Positions 2,208 through 26,772 are shown, counted from the stretch's first letter. The stretch is DNA of 64,000 bases from Macrostomum hystrix (GCA_950097015.1 CATNEN010000033.1:1798001-1862000); one strand, 5' to 3'. Program-made: numbers and translations. Notes: generated by a model from the letters alone, not told the origin.

Positions 2208-2466
2208 GTGAGTACATCGGTGGAGAGGTACACCTGACAAGGAAGAAAGAGAGAGCATCCTGGCCAAAATGAGCAACCAGCTGACAGAGACTCCCACCGG
2301 TCGTGATCCAGCACTGGATAAAGAGGACAAGACATCAAATGAAATTAAGGGACCAACTGAACAACCCTCAGGTGACTTCTCTGCCCTGCGAATTCCTGCA
2401 CCCTCAAAGAATTTGAGGATACTTGCCAACGGTTCGAGAAACACAATTGAAATAGTTTTCGAGTAA
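2208..2466 (+). pseudogene. YR0: relic of the last exon of a Crypton-type tyrosine recombinase
   Basis: Translates VSTSVERY(T*) then, after a frameshift, EERESILAKMSNQLTE...KNLRILANGSRNTIEIVFE*; colinear with exon 2 of YR1 (VSTSVERYIRRGKKRESKMAQISTCLTE...KTMKIVAHGDTNVVEVHFN*). Confidence 0.75.
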
Positions 2467-2771
2467 GGCGTTACATATCTTAATGAGGCTTTAAAGGTAA
2501 CCCTATTGTGTTGAGCATTGTGTTTCTACTTTTGTTGTGAACTATTCATGAATTTACTATATCCTGTTACACTACCTTATACCAAGCATCGTTTAGACTG
2601 AAATAAATACACAGATTTCCGCTAGAGCTGATTGTTATTGCGCAGGAATGAAACTTTCATTACATATATACGTACATATACGAGCGTTAAACTCTCAAAC
2701 AGTGTGCTCAAACATTGTCGACTGACTATTAAGTTGCATCATAAATTTGAGTGAGTAGACAGAGAGGGGTC

Positions 2772-2817
2772 AAGGGGGCGAAGCCCCCTTGTGGGGGTGT
2801 GGGGGCAGAGCCCCCAC
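2772..2817. other. Tandem pair of GC-rich 8-bp hairpins (GCGAAGC and GCAGAGC cores)
   Basis: aagggggc-gaa-gccccctt and gtgggggc-aga-gcccccac, followed by gtaCTAA. Confidence 0.8.
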
Positions 2818-3344
2818 GTACTAACATTAGGAAGTTTTAACAAAATGCTGCGCTTATCAAAATAATTGACTATGTAAGAGGGCCCCCTCTCTCTGGCATG
2901 AATCTGACCAGAGCTGCAGCAGGCGATCGGATAAGGTCTAGGTAGACAAATTAACTTAATTTTATGGCTGGCTGTGCACGGAAGGGGGGTGTCAGCAGAG
3001 GCGCGGCTAAGGGTAAAAAATATTTTATAGTAGACTCAGCGAGGGCTTGGGGGTGGGTCTAGGTGGGTCTAGGGAACGATCGATAATTGATGGCTGTAAA
3101 ATGTACAGTAAGCGAGACGGCCTGAAGAAGTTCATTAAATTCCACGATAATATACTGTCTACTTTATCTATCGGTCCTCAGTTCTTACCTCACAATCAGT
3201 TCTCTTATCTCGCAATGCCAGTTTTACGAGCGTAAAAGTAGCCCCCGCATCTCTAACTTGGAATTTAAATATACTGCGCATCGTCTTTGAGCTTCTATTT
3301 TTTACCTGTCGCTTCAACTGTCTAATCTTTGTCATCCAAGATAA

Positions 3345-4806
3345 ATGGCTGCCCTCGTGAACCATGATCTTTTGCCGCCACTGATTGACATGCAGTTCGC
3401 AGAAATAGCTGGTATGTCCCGTGACGAGATGCACATCGCTTCTGTAGTGAGCAATCTGGATAGAGAAATGGAAAGATTAGAAATCGAGAGTCCCATTTCG
3501 GATGCGGCTGATAGCAACGGCTTGCAAGAACTGATGGACGCGGACCCGGAGAAGCTGTGCAACTTAGACGAGCTAGAAAGTGTAGCTATACAACTGGAGA
3601 AGGACAACCAGTGCAAGTCCAGCATTGCGAAGGAGACGGCTGCTATCCAGCGCTTCAATGCTTGGCTGCTGGAGAAGAATCTCCAAATGAATTTCAAGAC
3701 GGCACCTGTGCAGGAGATCGCAAAATTCCTTCGCTTTTTCTACGCATCGCTGAAGAAGCCAGATGGAAGCTACTATTCGCCGAACACGCTGGTGGGTCTA
3801 CGCGCCGGGCTGTTTCGTCATTTTATGAAGCTTCGAGGGCTGAATATCATTACTGAGCCTCAATTCCACAATGCTAATTTGACCTTGAAGCACGCCTGCA
3901 GCGCCTTTATTCGTGACGGGGGTCGAATTCAGCACTCTAGTGCTTTAGAAGCTGAAGATCTACGTAGACTCACTGACTACTTTAAGAGGCGAGATCCTAT
4001 TCGGCTTCAGGATGAGGTGTACTTTAATACGCTTTACTACTTTGGGAATCGTGGTCGTGAGTGGATTAGAGGCCTAACCATGGACTCATTCGAAGCAGAA
4101 GACGACAACAAGGAGGCTCTAATGGTGGCAATTCCAGGTTCTTCATGCTGTCCTGTCGAGGCATTCCGACTGTATTGCGCCAAGATTCGCGAGGTTCCCG
4201 GGTGGAATGGTAAAGTTTTTTTTCTGAGACCAAAAGCTGTCATCGGACGGGATGGACTCTGGTACACCAAGCAGCCGGTCGGTGTGAACAGCCTCGGTCC
4301 GATGCTGAAGCGAATTTCGACCAGTGCTGGACTTTCCAAGACTTACACTGCTCATTGTGTCCGTGCGACTGTGGTCACCGAGCTGCACGAAGCCGGTGTT
4401 GCTGTCGAGACAATCGCAAAGGTAACAGGGCACAAGGTAAGTGAAACAAGATAAAATGATTTTATGCATATTCTTTGTAAATGAAAATCATATGCAGCAT
4501 ATGTACATGTACATGCTGCTTCACTATTTCTCTAAAAAATGCTTCTTTTTGCAGGTCAGCACTTCAGTTGAGCGCTACATCCGTCGGGGGAAAAAGAGAG
4601 AGAGCAAAATGGCGCAGATCAGCACCTGCCTGACGGAGTCACTCGCCGGTCACATCGCTGGCTCCTCAAGCACTTCATCTGTGCTATCGGTGGCTGCCGG
4701 AGAAGCTGGTGACACGGAGAAGATTCGAATCCAAGCCGATGGTCCCAAGACCATGAAAATAGTCGCTCACGGGGACACCAATGTAGTTGAGGTTCACTTT
4801 AACTAG
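3345..4806 (+). CDS. YR1: Crypton-type (DUF3504, KCTD1-like) tyrosine recombinase, two exons (3345-4436, 4555-4806), about 447 aa
   Basis: FLRFFYASLKKPDGSYYSPNTL core-binding motif; FGNRGRE (R), HCVRAT (HxxR) and TGHK|VSTSVERY (H...Y) joined by a phase-0 GT-AG intron 4437-4554 (aag/gtaagt ... ttttgcag/g). Confidence 0.85.
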
Positions 4807-5560
4807 CAGGACTGCACCAGTGTTGTTGGATTCATTCTTGCACACAGTAATAGTCACAGATTCTATATTACCTAGATTGGTTACGGTCACACGGTCCGCC
4901 GGTCTATCAGTCATCTAGTTCCCCTGGAGGCCGATGTCGACGCTTGCCGGCTCGGCGAATCGTCCTCCAACCCGGCCGCTGGTTCCCCCACCGGCTCAGT
5001 TGCCTGCCCGCCCGGGAGTCCGGACGCTGACCCAGTTGCCGACCAGCCTCTCCGCTCGTCCACCGGTTCGAACGACAACCTGCTTAACGACCCATCTGCC
5101 GACTCGTCGATTGGACAGTCCGACCGCGACTGCCGGGCCCTCTGTGGTCAAAAAATCCGTGGTGGCATCTTTGATTACTAACGTGATGTTCTCCAGACGT
5201 TCAAAAAAAATTACTAAAATTACTGAAATCCACTAAATGCTTCGAATGTTGCACTTTTATCTGTTATGACGCCCCCGAGATTTTCCGAGATTCACCCCGG
5301 ATTTCATCCTCCATATATTGCACTTCTTTTCTGGTCTTTTAATTTCTCAGTTCAGCCAGCTCTTTAATCCATCTGTGTCATTTTCTTCTTTCGTTATTTA
5401 CTCTGCTATTTGTTTGGTCTTTGGCCCTCGTTGCAGCCCGCTAAAACAGGTCCCGCGCAGCCAAGAGCGGATCTCTCTCTCTTTTTACTCAAAGTCAAAT
5501 ACATAACTTACATATTCTGGTTTAAATTAGTTTATTGTCTAAATCGACACAAGCAATTAG

Positions 5561-5688
5561 TGTAAAAATGGGATACAATGGTAGATTATATAGTATGATA
5601 CGGAGTTAAATAATGGCCATAATAAAGTCTATGGACATTATTTACCGCCGAAACATACTATCTAATTGCATTGTATCCCATTTTTACA
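5561..5688. repeat. About 128-bp imperfect palindrome upstream of YR2
   Basis: tgtaaaaatgggatacaatg / cattgtatcccatttttaca outer arms; inner arms atagtatg/catactat and taaataatggccata/tatggacattattta. Confidence 0.85.
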
Positions 5689-5769
5689 AGCATTACTAGT
5701 AGCCAATCATAAAAAATTATTTAAGTCAAGCAGTGAGTTAAGCAGTGAAAACTTTTGTTGTTGTCATGA

Positions 5770-6640
5770 CAACTTTTGTCATGGCCTACTCTGGAACTTG
5801 CAACTCTGCCTACTAGATCGGTCACTACTTAATGCTACTTAAATTAGGCAACCAGTCGACCATAGACAACCTTCCTGAATTACCTGAACTAACATCTGGT
5901 TTCGGCGACGTTGATTTAGATGCCGTTTAATTGTCGTCTCTTCCTCGAAGCTCAAGAGAACAAATGAGCAAGGCTGGCAAAGCATTTATGAAATTTTTGA
6001 GACGCGATCCATTCAAAGCCCCCAAGAGATGCCAGTGGCAATGCTAAACGAATTTCTGCGCTTTTTCTACTATACACTTAAGAAGACTGATGATAGTTTG
6101 TATGCTCCCTCTAGCTTGGTATGCTGGAGGGCTGGGATCCAAAGGTACTTCAGCATGATCCTAAAGCGTCCGCTTAATATCGTGTCTGGAGAAGACTTCG
6201 TTAGCTCAAATCGGATGTTGCATGTTAAGGTACACTAATTTCATAATGCAGGTGAAACAACTAAGCAGTTTCTATTAATCGAGGAAGCAGATCTGGAATA
6301 AGTCAAGGCATACTTTGATGGAACCACAGCCGAACGCCTACAGGACGAGGACAGGACGCCTACATTATCTATATTCTTGGCGAAAGAGGACAAGAACACC
6401 TTATGCATTTGAAACAGCAGGGAGCATTTTATCGACTCCGACGGAGTCAGGTACGCGGAGTCAACTGGCTGGCGAATTTTATGCGGAGGGTGAGTCGTCT
6501 ATGCAACTTGAGCAAATTGTATAGTAACAACTGCATTTGCGTTACAAGGATAGCTGACGTCCGCGATAATGGTCATTCTTTGAACGATAGTATGACTATT
6601 ACTGGCCAAAAGTCTGACAGGACTGTACGCCGCTAATTGT
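5770..6640 (+). pseudogene. YR2: degenerate Crypton-type tyrosine recombinase
   Basis: FLRFFYYTLKKTDDSLYAPSSL, ERLQDE, LGERGQE, LSKLYSNNCI, ITGQKSDRTVRR*; stops and frameshifts; a TAA lies at the catalytic Tyr position. Confidence 0.85.
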
Positions 6641-7028
6641 CTAAGCAGCGTGAACTGTACTGTACTCTGACAGTATCTGTTGTCTCTGACAGTTGCCTCT
6701 GGCGCCGCCGACCGCGCTCCCGCTCGCCTCGCTGTCCGTCTTCGAGTACGAGTACTCGCACGTATTTGCACGTGTTCCATATCGACAAAGTGGGCTTTGT
6801 CGGTGAGCGTCCGGAATATGCCCATGACAGTCAGCAGGGCTCTTAAGCGGAAGGGCGAAGCGGAGACTGCAATCTCTACATCAACGAGTGTGTCAGCGAT
6901 GCTGTTTGTGCACATTGAACCCAAACCAACTCTGCACCAATAAAAGAATGGTTTAGTATCAATAAATTTGGCAGATCTTACTCGAAATCGGGAAGTTTAT
7001 TTTTGGATAACCTAAAAATAGACAACAG

Positions 7029-7291
7029 AGTACAGTTCGTAGTGCACCCACAATCCTAAAGATATATATATATATATATTGACAAAAATTATTGTCACTG
7101 CCATTGTACATCATTCAAATGAATTCCTTTTTTAAAACAAAAAGCAAATCTTTTGATATATATATATATATCTCTTTAGGATTGTGTCTTATATATATAT
7201 ATATATAAGACGATTCGAGCCGCTTGTCTACCTACAAATAGCCGGCAAGTCCTTATATAATAGTAATGTGCGCGCACTGTGAACTGTACTT
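7029..7291. repeat. Foldback/MITE-like segment with nested inverted repeats and (TA)n tracts
   Basis: agtacagttcgtagtgc / gcactgtgaactgtact outer arms; cacaatcctaaaga / tctttaggattgtg inner arms; perfect palindrome gtctta(ta)n..taagac near 7187-7212. Confidence 0.6.
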
Positions 7292-7413
7292 CTAGCTAAT
7301 AGTATACTATTGACTTAACCGGGATCCAATTTAAACTAATTAAGTACCTATTAATAGAATCAGAATCGATAAATAAAAAAAGTATATGATCATAAGCACA
7401 TGTGCGCGCATAT

Positions 7414-7523
7414 TAATCTACTAGAAGTAATATAGCTTTTTGCAGCCTAGTTAATCCTGCAAGCATTTAATTTAATCATATGTAGGCGCAGCAATGGAAA
7501 GATAGTGCACGGCTTGCAAGTGC
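7414..7523 (+). repeat. 110-bp direct repeat, copy 1 (copy 2 at 11328-11437)
   Basis: taatctactagaagtaatatagc...cacggcttgcaagtgc; two mismatches between copies. Confidence 0.95.
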
Positions 7524-9570
7524 TTGCAAGCTAAAACCCGTACTTCTTAAGCTATTTAACGCAAGCGTAAGACTCGGCCAGACTCCTGCACAGTGGTCAA
7601 ATGCCCTAATCACACCGATTTATAAAAAGGGATCCCGTAGTGACCCCAAAAACTACAGACCCATAAGCGTGCTGCCTGCCCTGGCTCGTCTGTTTGCCTC
7701 ACTTATCTATGAAAAGCTAGAAACTCATATTCGCACCCTCGACTTGCTTTCAGCCAGTCAAATAGGAAATAAAAAGGGCTACCGAACTTCAGACCACATT
7801 GCCACTCTCTTGTCGTTGATCCACAACAAAAGGCGTCGCAAAAGACCATTTCACTTAGTATTCTTTTACTTAAAAAGCGCATTTGACATGGTCCACCATC
7901 CAACACTTTTCCAACGACTTAGGGAGTTAAAGGTCAGCCCAGAAATAATCGAAGCAATACAAAGCACGTACTCAGGAGCTAAATTTCAACTGAAGATCTC
8001 AGATGGCCAAGCAACTAAGGCAAGGAGCATAACAAATGGAGTAAGACAAGGCTGTGCCCCATCCCCTCTACTTTTCTCACTCTATATAGATCCTTTGAGC
8101 ACAATGCTAAGGGATTCATTTCGCAGCGACACCTTCATTAAAGATGAACAAATCAACAACTTGCTATACTGCGATGATTTAGTGATCTTTGGAGAGAATC
8201 CTCGAGGGCCTCGATAAAGTGTCTGAATTTTGTCAGAGCCACAAGCTAGAAATCAATATGCAAAAAACTAAGGTTATTAGCTGCTGCCCTGACCCATCAA
8301 AGACGGCTAACAAACTATTTCTGCAGGGACAACTGTTAGATAAAGTCAAAGAATGGAAATATCTAGGCTTTCACATCAATGCTAAAGGAACCGTGGATTC
8401 CCATGCCACAGAGATTTAAAAAAATGTGGATACCCTATTCTTCTCTTAAGGAAATTAGCTAGCCATGGGGCGGTCAGATACAATCAGCTCATGCTGTACT
8501 GCACAGCAATGATAGAAAGCATAGCTCTGTACGCCTCCGAGGCCTGGGGGGCTTTTGTCTCGTGGAACCTGGGTCCTTGGGACCGCTGTCTTGTGGAAAG
8601 GGTATACATCAGGTGCTGTAAAGCCATACTACAAGTCAGCCAAAATACGGATGGCAACGGGGCCCGCTCGGAGTTAGGCAGATTGCCTTTATTATACAAC
8701 ATCCAGAAAAGAAGCATTTCGTACTGGGCCTCCATAACAAGCCGGCCGGACTCCATAATTTTCAAGTTATTGGCGGAGCAAACATACAGTGATGTTGGAA
8801 TCAAAACAAAGATCAACAATGACGTTATGCTGAACTGCAGAGGCATTAGTCCCGCAAAAGCAATTAAAAACCACAGGAAAAATTTCGTTTCTCAGTTTGA
8901 TACCCATTGGAGACAAAGGACACAGAACTCAAGCAAGCTAAGACACTTCTATTACTCCTTCAAGCAATATTATTCAGCCGAAAAATATTTACAGCAAATA
9001 TACAACCCGGAGTTGAGACGTACCATATCCTCGTTTAGACTAGGAAACCATAAGCTAGCTTGCGAAACATTGCGAACTGCAAGACCGAAAATTCCGAATG
9101 AGAACAGATTATGTAGTAAGTGCAAAACAGAAGTTGAAAACGAGGTCCACTTCCTTTTTAAGTGCAGTTGGAATATGTATAGCGCAGCACGTTCGAATTT
9201 TGAGACGGAAATTTCTGGGAAAACTCCCAATTTCATATCCTTAACAGCAGAAGAGAAATCTAACTACATAATGGCTCAAGACGATAGGGAAACCATTGAA
9301 GCTTTAGCAAAATACATCATAGATATCTCTAAAATAAGGGAACAGCTGCCCTGAGACTACAAGCTCGTATTAACATTTAACAATACATATATTGTTTTAT
9401 TCGTGGCGTCCCTTGTGTTTTTACTGCTCTTATTTTTAATACCTTTGCTTTTGCTTTTCCCTTCCCAGCTCGATAGTGGAATCCTACAAAACTTTGCTTT
9501 TTATGTTAGGTTTTTCGTTGTCCATTAAAATATTTTTTTACAAAAAATATATAAAGGAAAAAAAATCAGC
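7524..9570 (+). mobile_element. 5'-truncated non-LTR retrotransposon (RT plus C-terminal CCHC; L2/Crack/Daphne-like tail)
   Basis: KNYRPISVL, GVRQGCAPSPLLF, LLYCDDLV, WKYLGF; tail FRLGNHKLACE..RLCSKC..ENEVHFLFKC; frameshifts near 8200 and 8420; A-rich 3' end near 9540-9565. Confidence 0.9.
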
Positions 9571-9598
9571 ACCTATAGATGGCGTGCGCGTTTTAATA

Positions 9599-11327
9599 TA
9601 GCATTTTGCGTCCGACTTAAGTTTATGGGCATTTCGCTTGAATTCCACACTCAAGGGCAACTGCTTTCCCAGTCTATGGCTCAAACGGGTGGCTGGCAGG
9701 CGATTGACTTAATCTTCGGGGCATGAACTTAGTCCATTTTTGCTCTCTAGTAGACCGAAAGCTGCGCTTCGCGCTCTAGCCTAAAGAGCAAAGGCAACAG
9801 TATGAGCTCGGAAGATGAAGGCAGCAACGCAAGCTATGAAACTGCCCCTGATGAGCAGGGTGACGGCCCACAACCTCGGACGTGGTCAATGATGAGCGAT
9901 GAGAAGCACAGCCTTGTCGTAGACGCACTGGACAGAGGTGAGCGGCCGGTCGATATCGCGCGATGGATGAAGGTTAACGTCAAGACAGTCATGTCAATTA
10001 AAAGGCGGTACGAAGTCCCTGGACGTCGCAATCGTCTCCCTCATGGCGGTGGCAGAGAACCGAAGCTCGGAGCGGTCCATGTTCAGTACCTGGTGGACAA
10101 AATAGTCGAAAATCCACTTCTGACACTGGCGGAGATGAGGAACCAGCTGCAGGAGCGATTTAATCTACAAGTAAGTGAATCCACCATCAGTAGGGCGCTG
10201 GACAAGCAGCTGATCACGCTGAAAAGTCTGGGGCGAGAAGCCGATGTTCCGGCAGCGCGCAACTCGCCAGAGAACGTGGCTCGGAAGCAAGAATTTGCTC
10301 ACTGGTTGATCGGCATTCCTCCCGAGCAGCGCTTGCTATTCGTCGATGAGACGGGTTTCAACATGTGGACACGCCGATCCCAAGGACGCAGTAGACGAGG
10401 CCAGCGAGTTCGGCGCGTGGTTGTTACACAGCGCGGAGCTCAACTGAAAATCGTGCAGGCCATCTCCCCAAGCCTTGGCCTCGTGTATCACAAGATGGTT
10501 TCCGAGACGATGACGGCGGCCAGGTTTCAGACGTTCGTCGAGGAGCTGATGCATGCTGTCAATAATCGCGATGATGTGGGCGACGCTGAACGGTTTTGCA
10601 TTGTGATGGACGGCGCTCGATTTCACAACGGAGTCACACTGCCGGAGCAGTTTGGAGCCAACTGGAGCCTTAAGGTCCTGCCGCCATATTCGCCGTTTCT
10701 GAACCCCGTCGAGGAGGCGCACTCATGCGTGAAGGCGTCAAGCGCGCACTGGCGCAGCATGAGGTGCAGCGTGAGCTGGACAGCCCGCCCCCACAGACGC
10801 CGCTGTACCAGTGGCGAATTCTGGTCATGCAAAGGATTGCTGAGGAGGCGACAGTGGAGGTCACGGCTGCGAAGTGCGGCGGATGGTACCGTCACTCACT
10901 GCGCCACCTTCCAGCCTGCATTGCCGGCCAGCCTATTTTGTGACCTTCAGTCGCTGAGTTGGATGAAGTTTTCCCGCTTGTATTTAAATTTTGTTAATTA
11001 TTGCCGCCTGTGTTCCCGTTGCTGAACCTTTCTTGCCTACGTTCCCGATTCTTTTCTCGTTTGCATTCATTTTTGGTAAGCCTCGTGGCATCACATCAAT
11101 AAATCACTTGGTCCTTGTCGCAACGCTGCCCACTAGGGCCTGCTTAAAAGCTTTCGGTCTACTAGAGAGCAAAAATGGACTAAGTTCATGCCCCGAAGAT
11201 TAAGTCAATCGCCTGCCAGCCACCCGTTTGAGCCATAGACTGGGAAAGCAGTTGCCCTTGAGTGTGGAATTCTGCCACTGTGGATCAAGTGAAATGCCCA
11301 TAAACATAAGTCGGACGCAAAATGATA
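9599..11327 (+). mobile_element. IS630/Tc1/mariner-superfamily DNA transposon with long TIRs and TA target duplication
   Basis: TIRs 9599-9763 and 11149-11327 (right copy carries a ~13-bp insert), TA on both flanks; transposase 9802-~10945 with HTH, FVDETGF, VMDGARFH, PPYSPFLNPVEE; frameshift near 10740. Confidence 0.9.
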
Positions 11328-11437
11328 TAATCTACTAGAAGTAATATAGCATTTTGCAGCCTAGTTAATCCTGCAAGCATTTAATTTAATCATAAGTAGG
11401 CGCAGCAATGGAAAGATAGTGCACGGCTTGCAAGTGC
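11328..11437 (+). repeat. 110-bp direct repeat, copy 2
   Basis: Near-identical to 7414-7523. Confidence 0.95.
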
Positions 11438-11476
11438 AACAACGCCTAGGACCACGAGTGCGCGTAGCGCACGAGT

Positions 11477-11655
11477 GTCTATGGCTTTTATGCACGTGCA
11501 AGCCGTGCTTCTATCACATTGTCATATTGACTAGCCAACTGATTGTTCTGACTATGGATTTGAGGGCAGGAATGAGCGAATCCTCGGAGGATTCCACTCA
11601 TTCCTGCCTGAAAATCCATAGGCAGAACTATGTTGTTTCACGATTGGCCATAGAC
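11477..11655. repeat. Nested imperfect palindrome upstream of YR3
   Basis: Outer gtctatggc/gccatagac; inner 84-bp hairpin 11545-11628 (gttctgactatggattt/aaatccataggcagaac, ggcaggaatgag/ctcattcctgcc, gaatcctc/gaggattc). Confidence 0.85.
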
Positions 11656-11817
11656 TAAAACAGCGGGCACGGAATGTCGTTGTGTGCCCGCTGCCCTGAG
11701 AATTTGTCAATGTCCAAAGCCCCTAAAGCCTGTTCATACAGCTGCAGTGAAGAGAGACGTGGAGGCATCGGACTAGAGCTGAGATTAGCTGCCCTGATAG
11801 CTTATTCTGACGGCAAC

Positions 11818-15060: not shown

Positions 15061-15065
15061 GTCTT

Positions 15066-15400: not shown

Positions 15401-15554
15401 ACCGGAATTTGGCGGGTGCTATAAAATTTAACCTTTTGAAACAGCAATGCAAAAACAGCAGACTCGGTTGGGCGGGTTGGGGGTGTGGTACCATAGACAA
15501 AATTTCATTACGAAGCGAAGAAAAAATTAAGAAGAGGCTATACTGATAGTATCT

Positions 15555-16995: not shown

Positions 16996-17684
16996 TTTTT
17001 AAACCGTCTCGTTACCAACTACGCTACGTTACCAACTATGACTACATTCGTTGACTAGTTCACTTATTCCTACCTACTCTTCGTTTTCATAGTTAAACTA
17101 CGAACCATGAAAATGGTTCATAGTTGGCCTCGTTTGGCCTCGTTTTCAGGCCAGTTATATCATATAATTGGCTTCCTTTGCAGTCCCGTTATATGAGATG
17201 AGACCATTGACAATAAAAAATTTAGACTTCCTACGGAAAAGAAAAGCCACGATATACTCAACATTATCGAGTTTCAGAAGGTAATTTCAGACCAAAGAAA
17301 TAAATAAACGGAAATAAAATATTTATACCCCGTTCAGAAGATTGCTCACTTGTTGTCGGTTGCCAGAGGAGCATTTGACAAGTGATCCAGAACAGCTTGA
17401 ACTTCAGCAAGACTAATACATTCAAAACCGAAGCTTATGTCTTCATTGTCACTCATGTTGAAAATAGCTCGGAATTTCGCAGTTTTTTATAAATAAGAGT
17501 TGAGATTTCTCCCTCTGCAAGCTTCGCTTCTCTTTTTAGTAACTGTACCAAGCTTTTTAAATTTTACTTCGTTTACTTACTTTTTAATTTTAACTTTAAG
17601 CCGAAACAGGAAGAGGCTTGTGGTGTAGGCTTAAACTTTTGTCGATTATCGCGACAGTCCACCGCGCGTTGCCGATATTCCGTC

Positions 17685-18363
17685 GTGCGCCCCGACCACA
17701 GCGACAGACTGGAGCAGTGCCTCCGCCACGGCATCGGAAGTTTCCGCTGGCACCTTGCTGCGTCTTGGCACGGGGCTGTGCGCAGTGCAATGACAAATCT
17801 GTGCGGCCATGAAGCATGGCACCTAAACTCCACCAGTCATCTATTTGTGGGCCCGAGCGGCGTTGGCAAGATGGCGATGGTGCAGCTGCACTACGGCAGG
17901 CAAACAGTTTTTACGCCGGACATCCGAGCTGCCTTCCAATTCGATGGGCTGCGCTTCACTGTGCACAGATGCATATTTTTTTATGAGTTTGATGCCAGCC
18001 GAAATGTCAACGGCCAGATATTGATGCTCATGAACAGGGACATGTTCACCATGAATGAAAAGATTAAGAATCACGTCCGGGCCGTCCGGCCATAATAATT
18101 GCCGGGCATGCCGAGCCGAGAAGTTGCAGAGGACTTTCTGAGGCGGCTGACTGCGCTTATTAGCGTACAGCATTACATCTTTGAGTGCACCGGTTGCAGC
18201 ATCATCCCGTCCAACCAGCCAGCCCACAGGGGCAGCTGCGGCGGCGGCGGCTGCGTCTGCTTCGTCCGACATTACTGCTGATGACGCCGGGGAGGAAAAT
18301 GGCAGGTGCGCTGCAGGCGCTGCTGAAGACGAAGAGAAAGATGTCGTCTACTTTAATAACTGA
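17685..18363 (+). pseudogene. Superfamily-3 helicase relic (CRESS-DNA virus Rep / parvoviral NS1-like)
   Basis: Walker A FVGPSGVGK; FQFDGL; Walker B-like CIFFYEFD; B'-like LMNRDMFTMNEK; motif C-like IIIAG after a frameshift at ~18095; arginine-finger-like FLRRL. Confidence 0.65.
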
Positions 18364-19108
18364 CACTGAAACAACATGCAGCAGCAGAAAACTTATGCTC
18401 AATACTGAATATTTGCGCTATATTTCGATTAGTTGGTCGGTTGCGTGCGACACTGTAACGGAATCCTCTCGATGTCTCCCACTATCTCTCTTTCTCTTTC
18501 TCCATACATCTTGACAGCTGACAGGTACAACAAAAAGTTAAATTTATTATTGATAAAAAATGACTATTTAGTCCCAGTCTAGCGAGGTAAGCATGCAACC
18601 GTTGGAGCTGCTTGTTCCACTCACAGTTTCTTGTTGTTCTGCTAAATTATTATGAGCTTAGGCTCGATTAGCAACGCACTGTTTACTAGTTAAAGTCTGA
18701 TGATTCAAAGTCTACTACTCTAGGCCGTATTGGCATGGTCTTCATTTAGCAATTAAGTGGAAATAGTTAATATTGGCCCCAAGTGCCGGATTTGCACTGT
18801 TCAATTAAGAGAGGAGCTTGTTTTTGTTAAAGGATCGGAATCGATCTGCGTTTTTTATTAAACCGGAGGGTCCTAGAAGGTGTGATTTTTTGACGGAGGC
18901 TTGTTTTCGAGGCAGGCACGCGGCTCGAGTCATGTTTGCACTTTCGACAGTAAAGAATTGAGCAGCATGGTGAAAATGACTTCTACTGGGCTATTTGCAA
19001 CGCACCGAATTGGATGCAGTAAAAACCAAATAGGAAGCAAAAAGGTATACTTGCTATAGCAGCCCATGGAGATGCATTCTTTACCATTTCTCCCGCATCC
19101 TCTATTTG

Positions 19109-19146
19109 CGTGTGTGTGTGTGCGTGTGTGTGTGTGTGTGTGTGTG
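19109..19146. repeat. (GT)n microsatellite
   Basis: Direct reading. Confidence 0.9.
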
Positions 19147-21459
19147 CACTGGGCAATTATTAGGACATGCGCTTACAACTGGACCCGTGCTCTTGGGACA
19201 AAATAAGTGTTGGGACAGTCCCAATAAATGCGTCCAACACTCCTGTGAATTTTGTCATATTGGAACAAAAATGGTGATTCGAACCAGCTTGGTATGATGA
19301 TTCAGAAAAGCATAATATGTCAATAGAATCAGTGACTGCTTGCTAAATTGAGAGAATACGATGTCCTAAAAGTGAAAGAAAATCATGCTCGTCTTAGTAG
19401 AACTGTTGGGACACAGTTTGAGGCTTCCTCTCCCGCATTTTTTTCTGGTCATTTTTCAAATGCTCTACTCAAAGTAGGGAAAGCGCAAACGATGATTTTC
19501 CTAATCATTCGCAATGTCCCAACAGCTCACTCACACAGGACCGAATGTGAAGTACGTTAGCTTTTAGGTACCTATAAAGTTCTTTGAGCCTGAGTCTGAG
19601 CTGAGTGGCCATGAGTGAGGTTGCAAATGAGATGCGAAAATTATAATAAAGCCTTTTTGCAGATATTCTACAAGACTGCAACCCCAACTTCAGTTGGTCA
19701 AAATGTATTAATAATTACAATTCTACAAACCCCTAATTCTGCATGCAGATCAAGCAGATTTCCATCGGCTACGTGCTGTTTTCATGGGCAATCGAAACGT
19801 ACCTGTAAAATTTATATGGATTTTAAAAATATATAGAGGTAAACTTTTAACCTTAAGCAATGCATTGATACTGGTAAACACAGGTAAAAGAGCCATCGAT
19901 GGAAAGAACATGTACAGAGAATCCGCTTAAGGTTCGTCCTAACAAGTGCCCGATACTCTGCTACACACTGGAGTAGGATATAAGAGAGGTAGTCTCTCCG
20001 TTTATTTGAACCTCTCTCCTCCGTTTAATCCAACCAATGAAAAATCTTAGCATGTACATTAAAGCAGACGTGTAGGACCACTTGACTTAAGTCACACTTA
20101 TGTTATACGCCTTTCGGCCCTCTCCGCGCATCCACCCTCTCCGCCTTTTGACCCTTATTTTAACCTCTTTAACTTCAACGTCCACCACTTTCTCCTATTA
20201 TAGATTCCAGATTTTCATTTTGTTTTTTTTCGTTGACTTAATTGATTTGAGGGAAGACGCGCATAAGCGTGGGGCCTACCAGTAAGGGCTCTAATGTTCT
20301 CGATCGAAGGGTTGAGGTCCGTTTCGATAAAAGGCACACAGCATATGGGCAAACCAACATAGTTCAGTTAAGTGAACTGAAATACACGGGACAAATGTGC
20401 CATGGTACGCGCGTCTCCATGGAATGGCGTGGCAAGATATGGCTCGGAACAGTAACAAACATGTAAGTTGGTTTTAGTTTTGCTTCAGAAAAGATATTTT
20501 TAATTTACCTTTTAAATCCGACAATTAACATGACTTGCTTTGCCTTTAGATGACTTTATGAAATACGACTTTCCTTTATTAGATACATCGACTTCGATCA
20601 GCCGCCATTTTCTGCCGTAACAAAAGGATTTTCTGCCTACATTAACAAGTAAGCTCTTCTGTACATGAATGTAGCTTGTGTAATTTGTTGATTTCAAATT
20701 TCTCTCATAATGAGTACAAAGCTTGAAAGTTAAAGTTAAAAATTGAATTGTAACTAATATAAGACTCCAGAAGGAGACTTTGTTCATAATAAGGTGGTGC
20801 TTGCAAAGAATAAAGGAGAGCTAATAGTTGCTAGAAGACAAAAGGATGACGAAAGTTATCCATCCGAATTTCTTCCTTGTCACAAATGCTATCAATTCTT
20901 GAAAGGGATTTGCTTTATCGTCATAAGGAGACATGTTCCGGTGGTCCGGTGGTCGACCTAAAGGAAAATGAACTGGACTGGCTGGCTCGGCATCTGGGCC
21001 ACGACATTGCTGTTCATAGCCAGTTTTATAGAATGCATCAAAATACACTTGAGCTCACGGTGTCAAAAATTCTTGACCTAATTAATAATGGCAAGCTCAC
21101 AAAGTTTCAAGGTTGAAGTCTCGAAGACATTACCCTTAAAGAGCTAGAGGAAAAGTATTCAATGTCTGGCGATGATGTGACCTCAGCTGAGGCAACCGAA
21201 GGCATGGCAACCGAAGGCATGTCAACCGAAGACATGGCAACCGAAGGCATGACAAACTCTGTCCCAGCCTCAAGAAAAGCTACTTCTGGCCGTCCAAAGG
21301 CCTCAATTAAGATACTATCAACAGCGAAGGAAGAGTCTGCGTCTAAAAGTGAGTTATATATATATGCTCGTATATGCTCGTATTGTATTTTATAAAATTT
21401 TAGAAGGAAAATATTTGACCAAGATGCTTTGCAGCGTAATTGAAAATTAACAAAGCACT

Positions 21460-24400
21460 TGTTACGTTTGAAGATCACGAAGGCACTTGGGTTTGTGAAT
21501 TGCAGAAGAGCGTTATTAGAGCAGCTCCAAGTTGGCATGAGCCTAAAGCTCGCTGTTATATTTCTTTACCCTTAAGGGGCATTGAAGCTTCTAGCAAACA
21601 AGATGTACAGTAGCATTTTGCCTCAATGGCACATAGACTACTTTTAGACGAGAATAAGTCTATAAATAAATCAGCATAGCATGCAGCATATGCAACACCC
21701 CCCACCGATGCTGAAAAACGTCAGTAACCCAAACGATCAGGGGGTCGACGTTGGCGAGAACTCCGCCTCAGTTCTTGCGCCGTTTCCGTAGCTTGATTAG
21801 CCGTGACGTCGGTAGTTTTTTCCTCCGAGACGGGTTTTTGATTCTGGTCGGAATCAGATCCGTCAGTCACGTCATGAAGCTTTGGTATAATATCCGATTG
21901 ATGTACCAGCCGACCCTTGTCGTCACGAAAGGTATTGGTTCCGACGGAAGTAGTAATCATTGACGGAACCCTCTCTTCCTTGTGTTCCACACGAATGAAG
22001 ACTGGTTCGGCTTGTAGTCGAGGTTGAATCCAGTCAGTGCACACTCTTGACAAGCGAGTTCTTGGCAGTTGAAGAAACACCAAACCAGCAGGAATAGAAC
22101 CATTGCATTGCGGTGTAGTATTGTGAAACAGACAGAACGCGATTGCAATTCGCTCTAGTTCAGCCGCGTCAGAAGTAGCGTTTGACTTCTTTAGATGAAA
22201 TTTAAACTCTTCTATTATCCGCTCCACTTGCCCATTCGACTGATGGTGACCTGGAGGAGTCAGAAGGTGCTGAACGAAGTTCTCCTTTAGGAACGTGGCG
22301 AATTCGGCGGACGTGAAATTTGTACCGTTGTCTGTCACCAAGGTTTGTGGGAGACCCATGTAATTAAATGTTTGTCGAAATGCCCGAATTACAGATTGCG
22401 ATTTCATTGAATCGATATGCCGAACATCCGCCCACTTCGAGAATGCGTCTACTAGCACTAGGAATCGGTGTCCTTTGAATATCGCGACGTCTGCGTGTAC
22501 TCTCTCGAAGAACGTCTGCGCATCTTCCCAAGAGGATAAATTGGAGTTAGTTCGCTTTCTTGCGTGAAGCTGACACTGTGCACACCTTCGAACGAAGCAG
22601 TTTATCTGCGTGTCGATTCCTGGCCACCAGAAATACTGTCGTGCCAAACGAATCATGCGCACAACTCCGGGATGATTTTCATGGAGCAGGTGTAAAATTT
22701 CCGTTCGTAATTCACTGGGTGGAACGATCCGCAATCCTTTAAACACAACACCGTTCTGAATAGTATACTCAAGCTTCCCTTTTGAGTAAGGCAACATGAC
22801 TTTCGGTAAGTACTCCGGCCATCCACCCTGAATGTAATGCTTCAGTGTCTGCAGATGGCAGTCATTCGTCTTAGCAATTCGACGCAGTAGATCTTCGGAA
22901 TTCGCAAAAGTGTCCAGGGCATTTATTGACAGTAGGTTGACGGATTCCTTCGTTATGCAATTGCCATTTGGAAGTCGCGACAGAGTATCAGCGGCGTACA
23001 TCGAATCGCCTTTGGAATATTCGATCTTGTAGTCATACGCTCGTAGAATGAGCGACCAGCGTTGAAGCCTGGCGGAAACACGTTCAGAAGATTTATGGTG
23101 ATCGAAAATGAACTGAAGCGGTCTGTGGTCTGATAGAATTGTAAATCTTCTTCCGGCGAGAAACTGGTGGAAATACTTAACTCCTTCGACGATAGCCAGC
23201 GCCTCTCGTTCGATATTTGCATAATTACCCTCTGCGGGTGTGAGCACTCTGCTTCCGAGCCAAACAATCTGTCTCTGCTCTCTGTCATGAGAGAGCACGA
23301 ACCCCAATCCATCCTTTGACGCATCACAAGTCAGAAACAGACGCTTTGACGAGTCGTAAGCAGTTATCGCTCCTTGTCGGATACTTTGCTTCAATCTCTT
23401 GAAGGCCTGTGAATGCTCTTTGTTCCAGAACCAGTGCTGTCCTTTCTTCAATAATGAATACAACGGTCGAGCGATGATAGAAAAATTCTTGCAGAACAGA
23501 CCGTAGTGTCGAAGAGTACACAAGGCGCTTTTTAATTGGTCTTTATCAGTGGGATCTGGCATATTTTCCCATGCTTCTATTCTCGCTGGATCAGGCTCGA
23601 GCTTGCCGTTGTGGATAATGAACCCGAGAAACTTGACGCTTTGTAGGCATTCCTGTGACTTGCGGGCGTTAATCTTGAACCCATTGTCAGCCAAACGCTG
23701 CTTTACCTTGTTTAGCACCAGGATGTGTTGTTGTCGGTCTCCGGGAGTTCCAATTATTATATCGTCTTGATACGAAGCAGTGCATTCTACGTTTCTGAGC
23801 ACATCATCCATGACTTCTTGGAAGATTAATGGTGCTGCGGAAATTCCAAACTGAAGACTTTTGAAAGCGAAGTAGCCCAGGTGCGTAGATATGCAGGTAA
23901 GTTTCTGGCTCTCAGGAGAAAGCGCAACTTGAAGAAACGCGTCTTCTAAATCCAAGACTGAATAGTACTTGGCATTAGGAATTTTAGAAAGGATTTCTTC
24001 TAGCTTTGGAAGCTTGTAGCGATCGGCATCGATTATGCGATTAAGCGTGACTGAGTAGTCGCCACATAGACGTATTGGTCTCGCTGAGCCTTGCTGCTTT
24101 AAAACTGGAACAATTGGCGCAGAAACGGTTGGTTCTTCCACTGGATATATAATGCCTGCATTTAGCAGTCGCTTGAGCTCGGTCTCAACCATGGACTTCA
24201 TAGAAAAGGGCAAAGATCTGGCTGGATATCGCATGCCGTCCGTTCTAGCATCTGAGCGGAGGCGGAAACTCGCGAGAAATCTCGAATTTGCATCACGCAC
24301 CACTGGCATGCAAAGAAGATCTTCTGAAATACTTCCGTCGATGTGTAGTATGTGCAGGCGCGATAGGAAATCCATTCCCAGTATAGCCAATAAATCGCTG

Positions 24401-25814
24401 CCTACATACACTTTTCCCGTGGCAGATCTTCCATCGGACAGAGTAATCGTTGCATCCTGAATGACTGAGTATATTTCTGGCTGGAATCCGCCGTACGACT
24501 TAAGCGTTTTAGTAACTGGTTTGAATTTCAGATTGGAACCGTCAGCAACGTGCTTGGGTATGATGGTAACTTGACTGCCTGTATCTACCAACATCTTAGC
24601 ACTCGCGTCTCCAATCTTGCATGTAACAAACCACTGATCCGTTGAATGACGATCTCCGATGTCGGTTGTCGCGTAGATTGCTCCTACATGCCCATGGCTA
24701 GAATCCTCTGATCGGCACACGTTCTGCAGAGTATTAACGGTCTTGGAGCGACAAACTGCTGCCAGGTGTCCAACCTTCCCACACTTTCGGCACTGCGCAT
24801 CCCTAAATCGGCACTTTGACCTGACGTGTCCTGCTTTTCCACATGTGTGGCAGTGACCAGTTTCACGAGGCTTTGTCGGTCCTTTGCGGTTGTCCAAACT
24901 GTGCTGCTGCTTGTGGGCAGGCGTCTTTTCTGGTCTTACCCATCCGGAATGACTCTTCTTCTGCACCGCCGCGATTGTATCCGGCTTGCTTGTTGCCATC
25001 CTAATCGACTCAGACAGCAAACCTTCTTGTATCGCGCCTTCCAAAGTGACATCCTCTCTTGAAAGAAGCTTTTGCTTTAGCACTTGATTCCGCAAGCCAA
25101 ATATGTACTGCGACAGAATTAGTTCGTCTCGGAGATCACCGAATCTGCATTTGTTGGCTTGGCGCTTCAGACATTCGATGTAGGTAGCAATCGATTCACC
25201 CTCCTTTTGCACCATGGAGTGAAGCACGTGTCTCTCATAGTGAAGCAATGTTTTGGGCTTAAAATGTGCGGTTAGCGAATTCTGGATATCATCGAACGTT
25301 ACTTCCTCCTTCGTGATGTCTTTTGGCTTTGCAAGCTCTTCTATCAGTGTGAAGGCTGCGTCTCCGCATGTCGCTAGAAGTACTGCTTTGGAGTGAGCTT
25401 GCTTCCCTGAAGCCACCAGGTAAAACTGCAGTCTTTTGAAATACTGCTCGATCTCGGGATAAGAAAGAGGCAGTTCTCCAAGTCTAAAATCCAACGGCTG
25501 AGTCATCACTCCTGCGAACGTAAGGTAGTCAGTACACAGCTTCTTCAGTGAATCCAGTGGTTTTTCCTCGTCGCCATGTTACGTTTGAAGATCACGAAGG
25601 CACTTGGGTTTGTGAATTGCAGAAGAGCGTTATGAGAGCAGCTCCAAGTTGGCATGAGCCTAAAGCTCGCTGTTATATTTCTTTACCCTTAAGGGGCATT
25701 GAAGCTTCTAGCAAACAAGATGTACAGTAGCATTTTGCCTCAATGGCACATAGACTACTTTTAGACGAGAATAAGTCTATAAATAAATCAGCATAGCATG
25801 CAGCATATGCAACA
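21460..25814 (-). mobile_element. Full-length Ty3/gypsy LTR retrotransposon A
   Basis: 238-bp TG..CA LTRs 21460-21697 and 25577-25814 (1 mismatch seen), 5-bp TSD GCACT, PBS tggcgacgagg, G-rich PPT. Confidence 0.97.
21721..25509 (-). CDS. Intact gag-pol polyprotein (1262 aa) of Ty3/gypsy element A
   Basis: Two CCHC knuckles, protease LVDTGS, RT YQDD, RNase H CDASKDG/DHRPL, integrase HHCC and D,D35E (VHAD, VTDNG, VER). Confidence 0.95.
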   Translation of the reverse strand: MMTQPLDFRLGELPLSYPEIEQYFKRLQFYLVASGKQAHSKAVLLATCGDAAFTLIEELAKPKDITKEEVTFDDIQNSLTAHFKPKTLLHYERHVLHSMVQKEGESIATYIECLKRQANKCRFGDLRDELILSQYIFGLRNQVLKQKLLSREDVTLEGAIQEGLLSESIRMATSKPDTIAAVQKKSHSGWVRPEKTPAHKQQHSLDNRKGPTKPRETGHCHTCGKAGHVRSKCRFRDAQCRKCGKVGHLAAVCRSKTVNTLQNVCRSEDSSHGHVGAIYATTDIGDRHSTDQWFVTCKIGDASAKMLVDTGSQVTIIPKHVADGSNLKFKPVTKTLKSYGGFQPEIYSVIQDATITLSDGRSATGKVYVGSDLLAILGMDFLSRLHILHIDGSISEDLLCMPVVRDANSRFLASFRLRSDARTDGMRYPARSLPFSMKSMVETELKRLLNAGIIYPVEEPTVSAPIVPVLKQQGSARPIRLCGDYSVTLNRIIDADRYKLPKLEEILSKIPNAKYYSVLDLEDAFLQVALSPESQKLTCISTHLGYFAFKSLQFGISAAPLIFQEVMDDVLRNVECTASYQDDIIIGTPGDRQQHILVLNKVKQRLADNGFKINARKSQECLQSVKFLGFIIHNGKLEPDPARIEAWENMPDPTDKDQLKSALCTLRHYGLFCKNFSIIARPLYSLLKKGQHWFWNKEHSQAFKRLKQSIRQGAITAYDSSKRLFLTCDASKDGLGFVLSHDREQRQIVWLGSRVLTPAEGNYANIEREALAIVEGVKYFHQFLAGRRFTILSDHRPLQFIFDHHKSSERVSARLQRWSLILRAYDYKIEYSKGDSMYAADTLSRLPNGNCITKESVNLLSINALDTFANSEDLLRRIAKTNDCHLQTLKHYIQGGWPEYLPKVMLPYSKGKLEYTIQNGVVFKGLRIVPPSELRTEILHLLHENHPGVVRMIRLARQYFWWPGIDTQINCFVRRCAQCQLHARKRTNSNLSSWEDAQTFFERVHADVAIFKGHRFLVLVDAFSKWADVRHIDSMKSQSVIRAFRQTFNYMGLPQTLVTDNGTNFTSAEFATFLKENFVQHLLTPPGHHQSNGQVERIIEEFKFHLKKSNATSDAAELERIAIAFCLFHNTTPQCNGSIPAGLVFLQLPRTRLSRVCTDWIQPRLQAEPVFIRVEHKEERVPSMITTSVGTNTFRDDKGRLVHQSDIIPKLHDVTDGSDSDQNQKPVSEEKTTDVTANQATETAQELRRSSRQRRPPDRLGY

Positions 25815-26772
25815 GCACTAATTAATGCAGAATAAGTTTTTCATTTTTTAATTTTATGACTTTATAATTATTTACTCGTATAATTAGTTATGCTCAAAAT
25901 GCTCAATTAATTGCAGCTAAAAATTGCTTTTTTTTCATTTATATTTTTTTCTCCTAAATCAATCCAAAGAATTGCGTTTGTACTTTTTCGTGCTAGGTGT
26001 TCAAATTAAGAGGCAGAAAAACAAAACACCTAAACCAACTTCCAAATGAAAGGATTTAGTACATCGATCTTTTTTTTGTATTACAACTCTGCTTTCAGAA
26101 AAGCCGCTCACATCTGGAAAGAAGGCTCAAATGCTCGAAGCTTACGCCTGTTTCATAAAGCGAAAGGTCCTGCCTGGAAAGAAGGACATCGTGTCACTTC
26201 GGCCTGAGAGCCTGGCGAACGTGGACTGGAAACAAATTAAAGACAATCTTGGGGTGGCGATTGGTAAAACTTAAACCGACCGTCATCATACCGTTATTAC
26301 TATTTTGGATAGAAGAGACCCAAATAAAAATGTAATTAACAAAATTTGATAAAAAACTACAGTACTTATAGTAATGATATTAAAATACACTTTATGCATT
26401 AAAATTGTTTCAGGGGAGTTCTAGTTGCCTTTTATCTATGTTTCAACGCTTAGTGTTTACCTTAACTTGCTATTAGCAGACGGAAAGCACGAGACATCCT
26501 AGTAATAGATCGCTGCGTTGGGACACAAGTTCTTGGAATTGTTGAGCCACATTCCTTCAAATTGTTTGGACAAAGTCTTTTGAATTTATGGGGCAGTCCT
26601 TGGAATCGCGTAAAATCAGAAATATTTTCATATCATATCTTCCCAATTATACTCCTTCAATACAGACGTGGAATTCTTTAAAATCTGAAGATATGGTTTG
26701 CCTTTCCATTCTTTGGATTTTAAATTGATTTACCATTTCATGTTTGCCTACGATTGCTAATTGCCCCAAAAA

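Follow-up and report, generated by a model that had tools for sequence, protein, structure and literature searches.

The window (i.e. the whole 64-kb stretch of Macrostomum hystrix DNA that was analysed) contains seven pieces of coding similarity to tyrosine recombinases (YR), named YR0 to YR5 with YR4a and YR4b counted separately, all of which lie on the + strand in a span of ~19 kb. Similarity searches place the pieces where the original prediction had put them. In a six-frame hmmsearch of the 64 kb using profiles of both YR families all matches with E<0.1 fell within 2212-21113 on the + strand; no YR match was found on the − strand or past 21.4 kb. The division into three subfamilies also holds; there are two deep clades of DUF3504 recombinases (A and B), and the separate family to which YR5 belongs. 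Amino acid identity among the copies is 30-47% inside a clade and ~20% between clades A and B. The pieces had been described as seven genes, but only YR1 and YR4b come close to full length, each with damage; the other five (YR0, YR2, YR3, YR4a and YR5) are fragments. Most of the catalytic residues (Arg I, beta-hairpin Lys, His-x-x-Arg II, His/Trp III and Tyr) are missing in each of YR0, YR3, YR4a and YR5. The left 33 kb of the window is gene-poor and nearly all derived from transposons.

YR1 (3345-4803, +) is a near-full clade-A DUF3504 recombinase gene. Exon 1 (3345-4436) is separated from exon 2 (4555-4803) by a GT-AG phase-0 intron (4437-4554), and the gene for the Macrostomum lignano relative P0016 has an intron in the same position. 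YR1 and P0016 are 55% identical over residues 1-505. The gene matches both DUF3504 (32 bits, cut-off 29.7) and Phage_integrase (27.4 bits, cut-off 27.1) in Pfam. It retains Arg I, HxxR (as HCVR), GH(K) and the Tyr (ERY), and the alignment reveals the loss of 28 residues that include the beta-hairpin Lys. YR0 (2205-2463, +) is the tail of a clade-A protein that comprises the last exon only, matching exon 2 of YR1 as had been noted. It is aligned by tblastn with P0016 392-506 and P0018 416-501 (HMM E 0.011), and survives from VSTSVERY to the conserved C-terminal end, 5′-truncated and with one frameshift. Exon 1 of YR0 was sought upstream, and none was found. One double GC hairpin is present in the window, at 2766-2820; another locus (L002) has it too, upstream of another YR, and it is absent from the other loci examined.

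YR2 (~5856-6672, +) is a degenerate clade-A relic, having frameshifts, an in-frame stop, and a deletion that has removed ~80 residues from the stretch separating the Arg I motif from G.WY. The His of GHK is replaced by Gln, and a stop (6634-6636) falls at the position of the Tyr. YR3 (11818-12763, +) is another clade-A relic, the sister of P0025 with 68% identity. A frameshift interrupts it near 12300; it is 3′-truncated at residue ~328 of ~500, and scores 19.1 bits with Pfam DUF3504, i.e. under the cut-off. The motif RLQDE..RGRE, which had been said to be common to YR1, YR2 and YR3, occurs in YR1 and YR3; the copy in YR2 is degenerate.

YR3 is preceded by a leader (11431-11533, +) that is homologous to the 5′ end of M. 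lignano elements of the P0016 and P0018 types. This was the sole significant match in the window to profiles of M. lignano element ends (nhmmer, E 2e-7). It is followed by a CCATAGAC...GCACG box (11648-11671), a pattern found once where none would be expected. The 5′ side of YR3 is the only place where a window element has a recognizable end. Using the M. lignano 5′ and 3′ end profiles in the window, nhmmer found no 3′ end and no clade-B end, and a search for a displaced 3′ end of YR3, as an inverted copy of the 5′ subterminal site, returned only the site itself. CCATAGAC was considered separately as a Crypton-end motif, occurring 10 times in the window compared with 1.2 expected, but it is ubiquitous in M. 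lignano loci, including two satellites, and was therefore rejected as Crypton-specific.

Two pieces belong to clade B. YR4a (15047-15373, +) is an N-terminal QRICH1-like fragment of ~100 residues (Pfam QRICH1 3.5e-6; tblastn to P0001 79-173) that has no catalytic domain, and its nearest relatives are P0006 and P0008. YR4b (15555/15630-16995, +) is a near-full DUF3504 recombinase (Pfam DUF3504 2e-20, 73.8 bits; Phage_integrase 27.4 bits) with a single frameshift, near 15960, and is 62% identical to P0001 over residues 9-462. It keeps Arg I (LRGG), the Lys of NKT, GH and the Tyr (ERY), and has QSLR, so that Gln replaces His, as is also the case in its relatives P0001 and P0002. The QRICH1-like N-terminal domain that had been attributed to YR4a and YR4b is present there but is not confined to them, with weak matches in YR1 and YR2 too. 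An ORF on the − strand between YR4b and YR5 (17841-18272) was rejected as a host gene, having no homologue and no Pfam match.

YR5 (20770-21392, +) had been singled out as unrelated to the other pieces, and it is indeed the relic of a separate family, for which there is no Pfam model. A zinc-finger-like piece (~365-434 in P0030, a relative of 971 residues) is joined directly to a C-terminal LGHD..H..FYR box (P0030 ~801-897), so that nearly the whole catalytic domain has gone. The sequence also carries a frameshift, as well as a stop codon in frame at 21114-21116. The family is large, with 947 relatives, and gave no match in Pfam. Sequence-profile evidence for its nature is weak (hhalign E 0.16; XerA E 0.39), and structure prediction was therefore used to assess the fold. 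The AF2 model of P0040:308-703, from 30 sequences, has a pLDDT of 88.6, and its top matches by Foldseek are XerH, XerA, XerD, lambda Int and Cre (probability 1.00, E 3e-4). Full-length members have invariant NKRR.GE, GKRGR, KLRKY and LGHD..H..FYR. The predicted fold, taken with these catalytic motifs, indicates that the family is probably one of tyrosine recombinases.

The YR pieces are interleaved with other transposons. A block extending to 26275 had been predicted, and the YR pieces are in it, but two non-LTR RT fragments, two Tc1/mariner copies and a Gypsy LTR element had gone unmentioned. LINE-A (7524-9566, +) is a 5′-truncated RT element that we have taken as non-LTR (Pfam RVT_1 6e-27, with weak zf-RVT). 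Its 3′ end is A-rich, and a 110-nt direct repeat, whose copies (7414-7523 and 11328-11437) are 98% identical, flanks the element. Tc1-A (9597-11329, +; Pfam DDE_3 and HTH) lies at the junction of LINE-A and the second copy of this repeat, and its terminal inverted repeats have 124-nt arms that are 100% complementary, with TA at the flanks. Tc1-B (12855-13370, +) is a Tc1/mariner transposase fragment truncated at both ends, corresponding to residues 38 to ~190 of the Tc1-A protein with 53% identity. It is fused in frame to the 5′ side of LINE-B (13400-15116, +), an RT fragment of a second family (Pfam RVT_1 2e-20) that is cut just past the start of its RNase H-like FTNGS motif. The Gypsy-type LTR retrotransposon (21460-25835, −; Pfam RVT_1, RNase H, rve, protease and gag) has an open gag-pol of 1262 codons and LTRs of ~240-260 nt with 96% identity. 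It starts 67 nt past the end of the YR5 ORF, outside the YR array, and fills the last 5 kb of the block. Both of the Gypsy elements that adjoin the YR array on its right lie on the − strand.

The closest named relatives of the window copies are young, dispersed, single-ORF elements of 1.75-2.0 kb in M. lignano. Three families are represented on different contigs, by at least 12, 9 and 4 copies that are nearly identical. The copies have 1.74-2.08 kb in common with 97.6-99.6% identity, their ends are sharp and their flanks unrelated, and these are therefore mobile elements. The YR is the sole ORF in all three families, and there is no RT. The elements have subterminal direct repeats of 27-31 nt and an inverted repeat of 17-19 nt, and no LTR-like repeats. 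A core of 4-6 bp was sought in three copies from each family, and none was identified. Seven of nine M. lignano loci are solitary, and the other two have a second YR piece within 5 kb, on the opposite strand.

It had been suggested that the block might be one large composite element with several recombinases. RT fragments adjoin both YR2 and YR4a on the same strand, and two M. lignano relatives of different clades have a common locus-tag stem (Mlig005367), either of which might suggest such an element, or the remains of DIRS- or Ngaro-type elements in which RT and YR occur together. However, the relatives are autonomous and their loci mostly solitary, and the window copies are separated by unrelated DNA, including LINE and Tc1 sequence. 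LINE-A has its own flanking repeat and A-rich end, LINE-B forms a fusion with Tc1-B, and both RT fragments are insertions distinct from the YR pieces. The window copies and their relatives differ from DIRS and Ngaro retrotransposons in these respects, and the YRs of the latter do not match DUF3504 (Kojima and Jurka, PMC3212892). We therefore regard a composite or DIRS-type origin as very improbable.

The predicted assignment to Crypton-type elements is supported, the pieces being DUF3504/CryptonA elements together with the one relic of the second recombinase family. As in CryptonA (Kojima and Jurka 2011, PMC3212892; PMC13465315), the sole gene is a DUF3504-type YR with an N-terminal QRICH1/SAM-like domain, there are neither RT nor long terminal repeats, and there are multiple dispersed copies with deleted derivatives common. 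There are also differences. Flatworms are absent from the six phyla listed in 2011 (PMC3212892). The present proteins share a conserved C-terminal tail (K-K/R-M-K/R-I-x-A-N-G...F/W-E), an intron separates GHK from S..ERY in one lineage, and in clade B the His of HxxR is replaced by Gln. The M. lignano relatives have structured ends, whereas animal Cryptons have been reported to lack terminal repeats, and a dense one-strand cluster like that in the window is not described for Cryptons in the literature searched. The domesticated DUF3504 genes (ZMYM2/3/4, QRICH1, KCTD1, KIAA1958 and WOC) similarly have DUF3504 and QRICH1-like domains, and the UniRef name of the M. lignano relatives is 'ZMYM2-like/QRICH1 C-terminal domain-containing'. 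By contrast with those genes, the intact relatives keep the catalytic Arg, Lys, Arg, His and Tyr and are multicopy, with 98-99% identity and sharp mobile-element ends, and the window copies are pseudogenes.

The copies had been considered too divergent to result from tandem duplication. This was borne out by a quick ML tree and AU tests on the window copies and their relatives, in which the window copies are not each other's closest relatives. YR3 pairs with P0025 (support 100), YR1 and YR0 with M. lignano P0016-19 (99), YR4a with P0006/P0008 (95) and YR4b with P0001 (99). The AU test rejects YR1, YR2 and YR3 as a single clade (p 2.5e-8), and rejects YR4a and YR4b as a single clade (p 1.5e-4). 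Local duplication is rejected by the phylogeny because every copy has nearer kin elsewhere. An old tandem duplication of one recombinase gene, with divergence in place, would explain why one strand is used throughout and why the clade-A copies are roughly evenly spaced (ORF-to-ORF spacers of 881 bp for YR0-YR1, ~868 bp for YR1-YR2, and ~1045 bp for YR2-YR3 with LINE-A and Tc1-A removed). But it is opposed not only by the tree. The position of the YR1 intron is empty in YR2 and YR4b, the spacers are unrelated in sequence, and neutral decay to 35-45% protein identity is incompatible with readable ORFs. We find this explanation scarcely credible. Independent insertion and decay of the copies is highly probable, and the cluster is a dense one-direction graveyard of Cryptons that arrived separately, rather than a working multi-recombinase system.

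If the events were independent, seven of seven YR pieces would fall on one strand with a probability of 2 x (1/2)^7 = ~0.016, a post hoc value. Between 2 and 21.4 kb all 11 elements (seven YR pieces, two RT fragments and two Tc1 copies) are on the + strand, for which the probability is ~0.001; if the two Gypsy elements are counted this becomes 11 of 13 (p ~0.02, also post hoc). It might be that transposons of all kinds pile up in a gene-poor stretch, and that the + run is a coincidence picked out after the event. The high transposon content of the left 33 kb is in keeping with this, and the values of ~0.016 and ~0.02 were both chosen post hoc from many windows. On the other hand, chance accounts poorly for the 11 of 11, and for the packing of seven YR pieces into 19 kb, when the 180 kb that flank the nine M. 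lignano loci are far sparser, with two extra pieces. Chance is possible, but we doubt that it is the explanation.

The original prediction proposed that the elements integrate within one another, or else at a common recombination site. Cores of 4-6 bp have been reported for Cryptons (PMC3212892, PMC9977147), and active Cryptons recombine a 5-nt terminal motif with a near-identical target (PMC9977147), so that the flank of a resident copy regenerates a target. Circular Cryptons might recombine at a core beside resident Cryptons, with the asymmetry of the core fixing orientation and leading to a head-to-tail array of different lineages. Such homing is consistent with the common strand of all seven YR pieces and the lack of any other in the 64 kb, with the similar lengths of the clade-A spacers, and with the second YR piece close by at two of the nine M. 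lignano loci. However, no shared sequence was found by sensitive blastn of all the spacers, and the three clade-A spacers have no common 12-16-mer, although the reported cores are shorter than this. The Crypton 5′ leader is found before YR3 only. Most of the copies are truncated at their junctions, and they are not joined end to end, with ~0.4 kb of other DNA between YR2 and the 5′ end of YR3. Clades A and B and the unrelated YR5 family would all need a common site, and in M. lignano the strands differ within each of the two neighbour pairs. LINE and Tc1 fragments, which have another integration chemistry, have the same polarity. The idea is weakened by these observations, and we consider homing unlikely.

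More generally, it is quite improbable that Cryptons of different lineages, and perhaps of different families, integrate beside residents in a fixed orientation to generate polar multi-recombinase arrays. If this were true it would be a eukaryotic counterpart of the way in which integrative elements accrete in tandem at the attachment (att) sites of bacteria. Accretion at att sites would yield co-oriented arrays of different integrase-bearing elements. The cluster differs from these in that no repeated att-like core was found and the copies are not end to end, and in the like polarity of other classes of element.

The + orientation is common to the four interleaved non-YR fragments, and we therefore take the polarity to be regional, rather than due to site choice by the recombinases. 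The region may keep insertions strand-selectively, as a one-strand piRNA-type cluster or by some other transcription-linked filter. One-strand piRNA clusters such as flamenco of Drosophila contain nested truncated fragments of many classes in nearly one orientation. The block, as read from its sequence only, is similar in its nested truncated fragments of many classes in nearly one orientation, but differs in that the two Gypsy elements beside the block are in the other orientation. Moreover, four of four non-YR fragments on the + strand is weak when taken alone (1 in 8, two-sided), and the density of YR pieces and the similar clade-A spacers would be more directly explained by recombinase-driven homing. 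A regional cause of the polarity is thus a tentative reading that falls a little short of an even chance.

At least five Crypton lineages, small elements having a DUF3504-type tyrosine recombinase as their only gene, very probably inserted independently within ~15 kb. By analogy with other Cryptons they would have been excised as a circle, and a short core would have served for their site-specific re-integration. An element of the second recombinase family is found 4 kb further on. All the copies then decayed by truncation, internal deletion and frameshifts, and LINE, Tc1/mariner and Gypsy insertions cut them up further. The order of insertion can be read in one case, with the YR3 Crypton followed by LINE-A and then by Tc1-A. 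As the cause of the clustering we infer, as most likely, independent accumulation and decay in a transposon-rich region whose polarity is either regional or a matter of chance; with the polarity taken as regional, we judge the case for the statement as a whole to be evenly balanced.

Crypton activity has been directly seen only in Chlamydomonas (PMC9977147), and little is known of the integration sites of animal Cryptons. The cluster provides a concrete locus at which to ask whether recombinases home to one another, or whether regions keep one orientation. In itself it is a case of ordinary transposon decay, with a polarity that is without explanation, and the by-products of the analysis may outweigh it. 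M. lignano, a transgenic laboratory flatworm, has young Crypton families with sharp, structured ends, and the YR5-type family, which is large and has no Pfam model, is now tied by prediction to the recombinase fold.

All seven tyrosine-recombinase (YR) stretches of the original prediction are real, and all lie on the + strand at the places proposed. In six-frame searches with hmmsearch and two profiles, one of DUF3504 type (A2) and one of YR5 type (A3), all matches with E < 0.1 fall between 2212 and 21113, on the + strand; neither profile gave a YR match on the − strand or in the remaining 43 kb of the window. They are not, however, seven genes as had been claimed. Only YR1 and YR4b are near full length, both are damaged, and the rest are fragments or relics. 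YR1 (3345-4803, +) contains a phase-0 GT-AG intron (4437-4554) between GHK and VSTSVERY, i.e. at the same position as the intron of the Macrostomum lignano P0016 gene, and lacks 28 residues at the place where the alignment puts the β-hairpin lysine of every relative. YR4b (15555-16995, +) corresponds to residues 9-462 of the related protein P0001 with 62% identity, and has one frameshift near 15960. YR0 is a tail exon only. YR2 is broken by frameshifts and an in-frame stop, has lost ~80 residues, carries Gln in place of the His of GHK and has a stop at the expected Tyr codon, while YR3 has a frameshift and is cut at about residue 328. YR4a is a ~100-residue piece of the N-terminal domain, and YR5 joins residues ~365-434 of its relative P0030 (971 residues) directly to ~801-897. 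At 12694-12834 (+), in another frame at the broken YR3 end, the N-terminal domain of the DUF3504-type profile gives one more, marginal hit (E 0.076), which may be an eighth small YR relic, or noise. In alignments and trees the broken copies were bridged by X at each break, and the YR1 exons were searched separately.

YR0 to YR4b belong to the DUF3504/Phage_integrase proteins and have a QRICH1-like N-terminal domain; they are of the CryptonA kind (PMC3212892, PMC13465315). The window elements are new members of this known kind; the flatworm phylum is absent from the 2011 list of Crypton phyla (PMC3212892). A maximum-likelihood tree of the window copies with 28 database relatives has two deep clades, each with support of 100, that share a conserved C-terminal tail. 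Clade A contains YR0-3, and clade B YR4a and YR4b. In clade-B recombinases (including multicopy M. lignano forms, P0001, P0002 and the window sequence at 16594-16640) the His of HxxR is replaced by Gln (QSLR); the Arg, Lys, GH and Tyr remain in place. On this tree each window copy has nearer relatives outside the array: P0025 is the partner of YR3 (68% identity, support 100) and P0001 that of YR4b (support 99), while YR1 and YR0 cluster with M. lignano P0016-19 (support 99) and YR4a with P0006 and P0008 (support 95). AU tests rejected a single clade of YR1, YR2 and YR3 (p 2.5e-8) and one of YR4a and YR4b (p 1.5e-4). These results rule out both local tandem duplication and the misassembly of one repeat, and bear out the view that the copies are too divergent for simple tandem duplication.

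YR5 belongs to a separate family, in which family scans found no Pfam domain. An exhaustive search gave 947 relatives at E ≤ 1e-3 (P0029-P0178 among them), with proteins of 500 to 1000+ residues; full-length members have invariant NKRR.GE, GKRGR, KLRKY and LGHD..H..FYR motifs. The PDB structures matched by the AlphaFold model of a YR5-type protein (pLDDT 88.6) are all tyrosine recombinases or type IB topoisomerases, and XerH, XerA, XerD, lambda Int and Cre match with probability 1.00. The family is confidently predicted to have the tyrosine-recombinase fold, and on the strength of that prediction the proposed three recombinase groups stand, as clade A, clade B and the YR5 family. The last may be one of the Repbase Crypton groups. 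One YR5-type protein also has a fused SET domain.

The closest relatives in M. lignano form three families, of at least 12, 9 and 4 copies with >90% protein identity on different contigs, represented by loci L001/L006/L010, L002/L008/L009 and L003/L007/L011. Over 1.74-2.08 kb, copies at different loci are 97.6-99.6% identical in DNA; the elements end sharply, their flanks are unrelated, and their sole ORF is the recombinase. A direct repeat of 27-31 nt precedes the ATG and recurs near the 3′ end, and the terminal 17-19 nt repeat, in inverted orientation, a site that lies 40-125 nt in from the 5′ end. In some copies a leader of 84-110 nt is added at the 5′ end. These are young, Crypton-like mobile families.

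The 5′ leader of two of the M. lignano families has a homologue in the window at 11431-11533, the only significant nhmmer match (E 2e-7), and the matching CCATAGAC...GCACG box occurs once, 147 nt upstream of the YR3 start. YR3 is thus a Crypton that has kept its 5′ end; nhmmer detected no comparable 5′ end before YR1, YR2 or YR4b in the window. A 110-nt direct repeat of 98% identity (7414-7523 and 11328-11437) brackets the reverse-transcriptase (RT) fragment LINE-A (7524-9566) and the Tc1/mariner copy Tc1-A, and overlaps the start of the YR3 leader. Weaker similarity reaches ~25 nt farther upstream. The repeat looks like an unusually long target duplication from the LINE insertion. Tc1-A (9597-11329), whose 124-nt repeat arms are perfectly complementary and which is flanked by TA, looks to have landed later, at a TA of the LINE-A junction. 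The nesting gives the order of insertion as YR3 Crypton, LINE-A, Tc1-A. A second copy, Tc1-B, truncated at both ends, is fused to the RT fragment LINE-B, the two spanning 12855-15116. Most YR copies stop at such junctions or at deletions rather than at element termini.

We note that the window has 10 occurrences of the 8-mer CCATAGAC, where 1.2 would be expected; all fall within 1.3-15.5 kb (1299-15498), and each terminal repeat of Tc1-A contains one of them. The 8-mer abounds in the M. lignano loci, frequently in the form GGCCATAGAC(A/T)AA, and is the core of two satellites there (L001 20854-21554; L009 4805-5406). The window has one copy, at 2766-2820, of a 57-nt element that contains two GC hairpins (GGGGGC-GAA-GCCCCC and GGGGGC-AGA-GCCCCC). 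It is 89% identical to L002 6566-6620 (−), and at both places a YR ORF of matching orientation lies downstream of it.

The window also contains Gypsy, Tc1/mariner and non-LTR RT sequences. One Gypsy-type LTR retrotransposon (21460-25835, −) starts 67 nt past YR5 and has an uninterrupted 1262-codon gag-pol and LTRs that are 96% identical; the other (29248-33114, −) is interrupted by one or more stops between RT and RNase H-integrase. The right half carries host genes on the − strand, i.e. TPR/PEX5-like, WASH, CP2/grainyhead-like with SAM_3, and VPS52. Among the exons of the CP2/grainyhead-like gene lies an ORF (48951-49889, +) with a GIY-YIG endonuclease domain, as is typical for Penelope-like elements. 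The host genes and the stretches between them contain long minisatellites (37.8-40.8, 50.2-51.3, 57.9-58.3, 60.4-60.8 and 63.3-64.0 kb) with periods of ~15-33 nt, which produce long spurious ORFs in several frames. The window recombinases are 49-56% identical to their best named relatives, which are M. lignano proteins, and M. lignano contigs match several non-coding interspersed repeats of the window at 71-89% identity (71-84% for those at 1948-2143, 34129-34730, 46988-47036 and 52768-52827). By its elements and host genes the window is animal-like and not human; the shared repeats give the chief hint of its origin, which is probably a macrostomid flatworm or something closely related.

The original prediction had the polar array built by Cryptons integrating into each other or into one shared site. 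Such homing is consistent with seven of seven YR pieces being on the + strand with none elsewhere in the window, with the similar ORF-to-ORF spacers of clade A (881, about 868 and about 1045 bp with LINE-A and Tc1-A removed), and with the short terminal core matching the target that Cryptons use (PMC9977147). However, the spacers share neither sequence nor any 12-16-mer, ~0.4 kb of other DNA separates YR2 from the YR3 5′ end, and one site would have to serve three very different recombinase groups. Of the copies at nine M. lignano loci, surveyed over 180 kb of flanks, seven are solitary, and the two neighbouring YR pieces found both lie on the opposite strand. Moreover, the + strand also carries the four non-YR fragments of the block, making 11 of 11 within 2-21.4 kb, yet these four integrate by unrelated chemistry. 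We therefore place first, at a little short of even confidence, a regional, strand-selective retention or accumulation of elements, in which independent insertion and decay are well supported and the cause is what we infer. Chance clustering and co-orientation is unlikely, homing slightly more doubtful still, and duplication or a composite element very improbable even taken together.

The cluster is of a familiar type, a polar transposon graveyard. No description of Crypton arrays was found in the literature searched, so its polarity is a lead rather than a result. The young M. lignano families are candidate active Cryptons in a laboratory flatworm.
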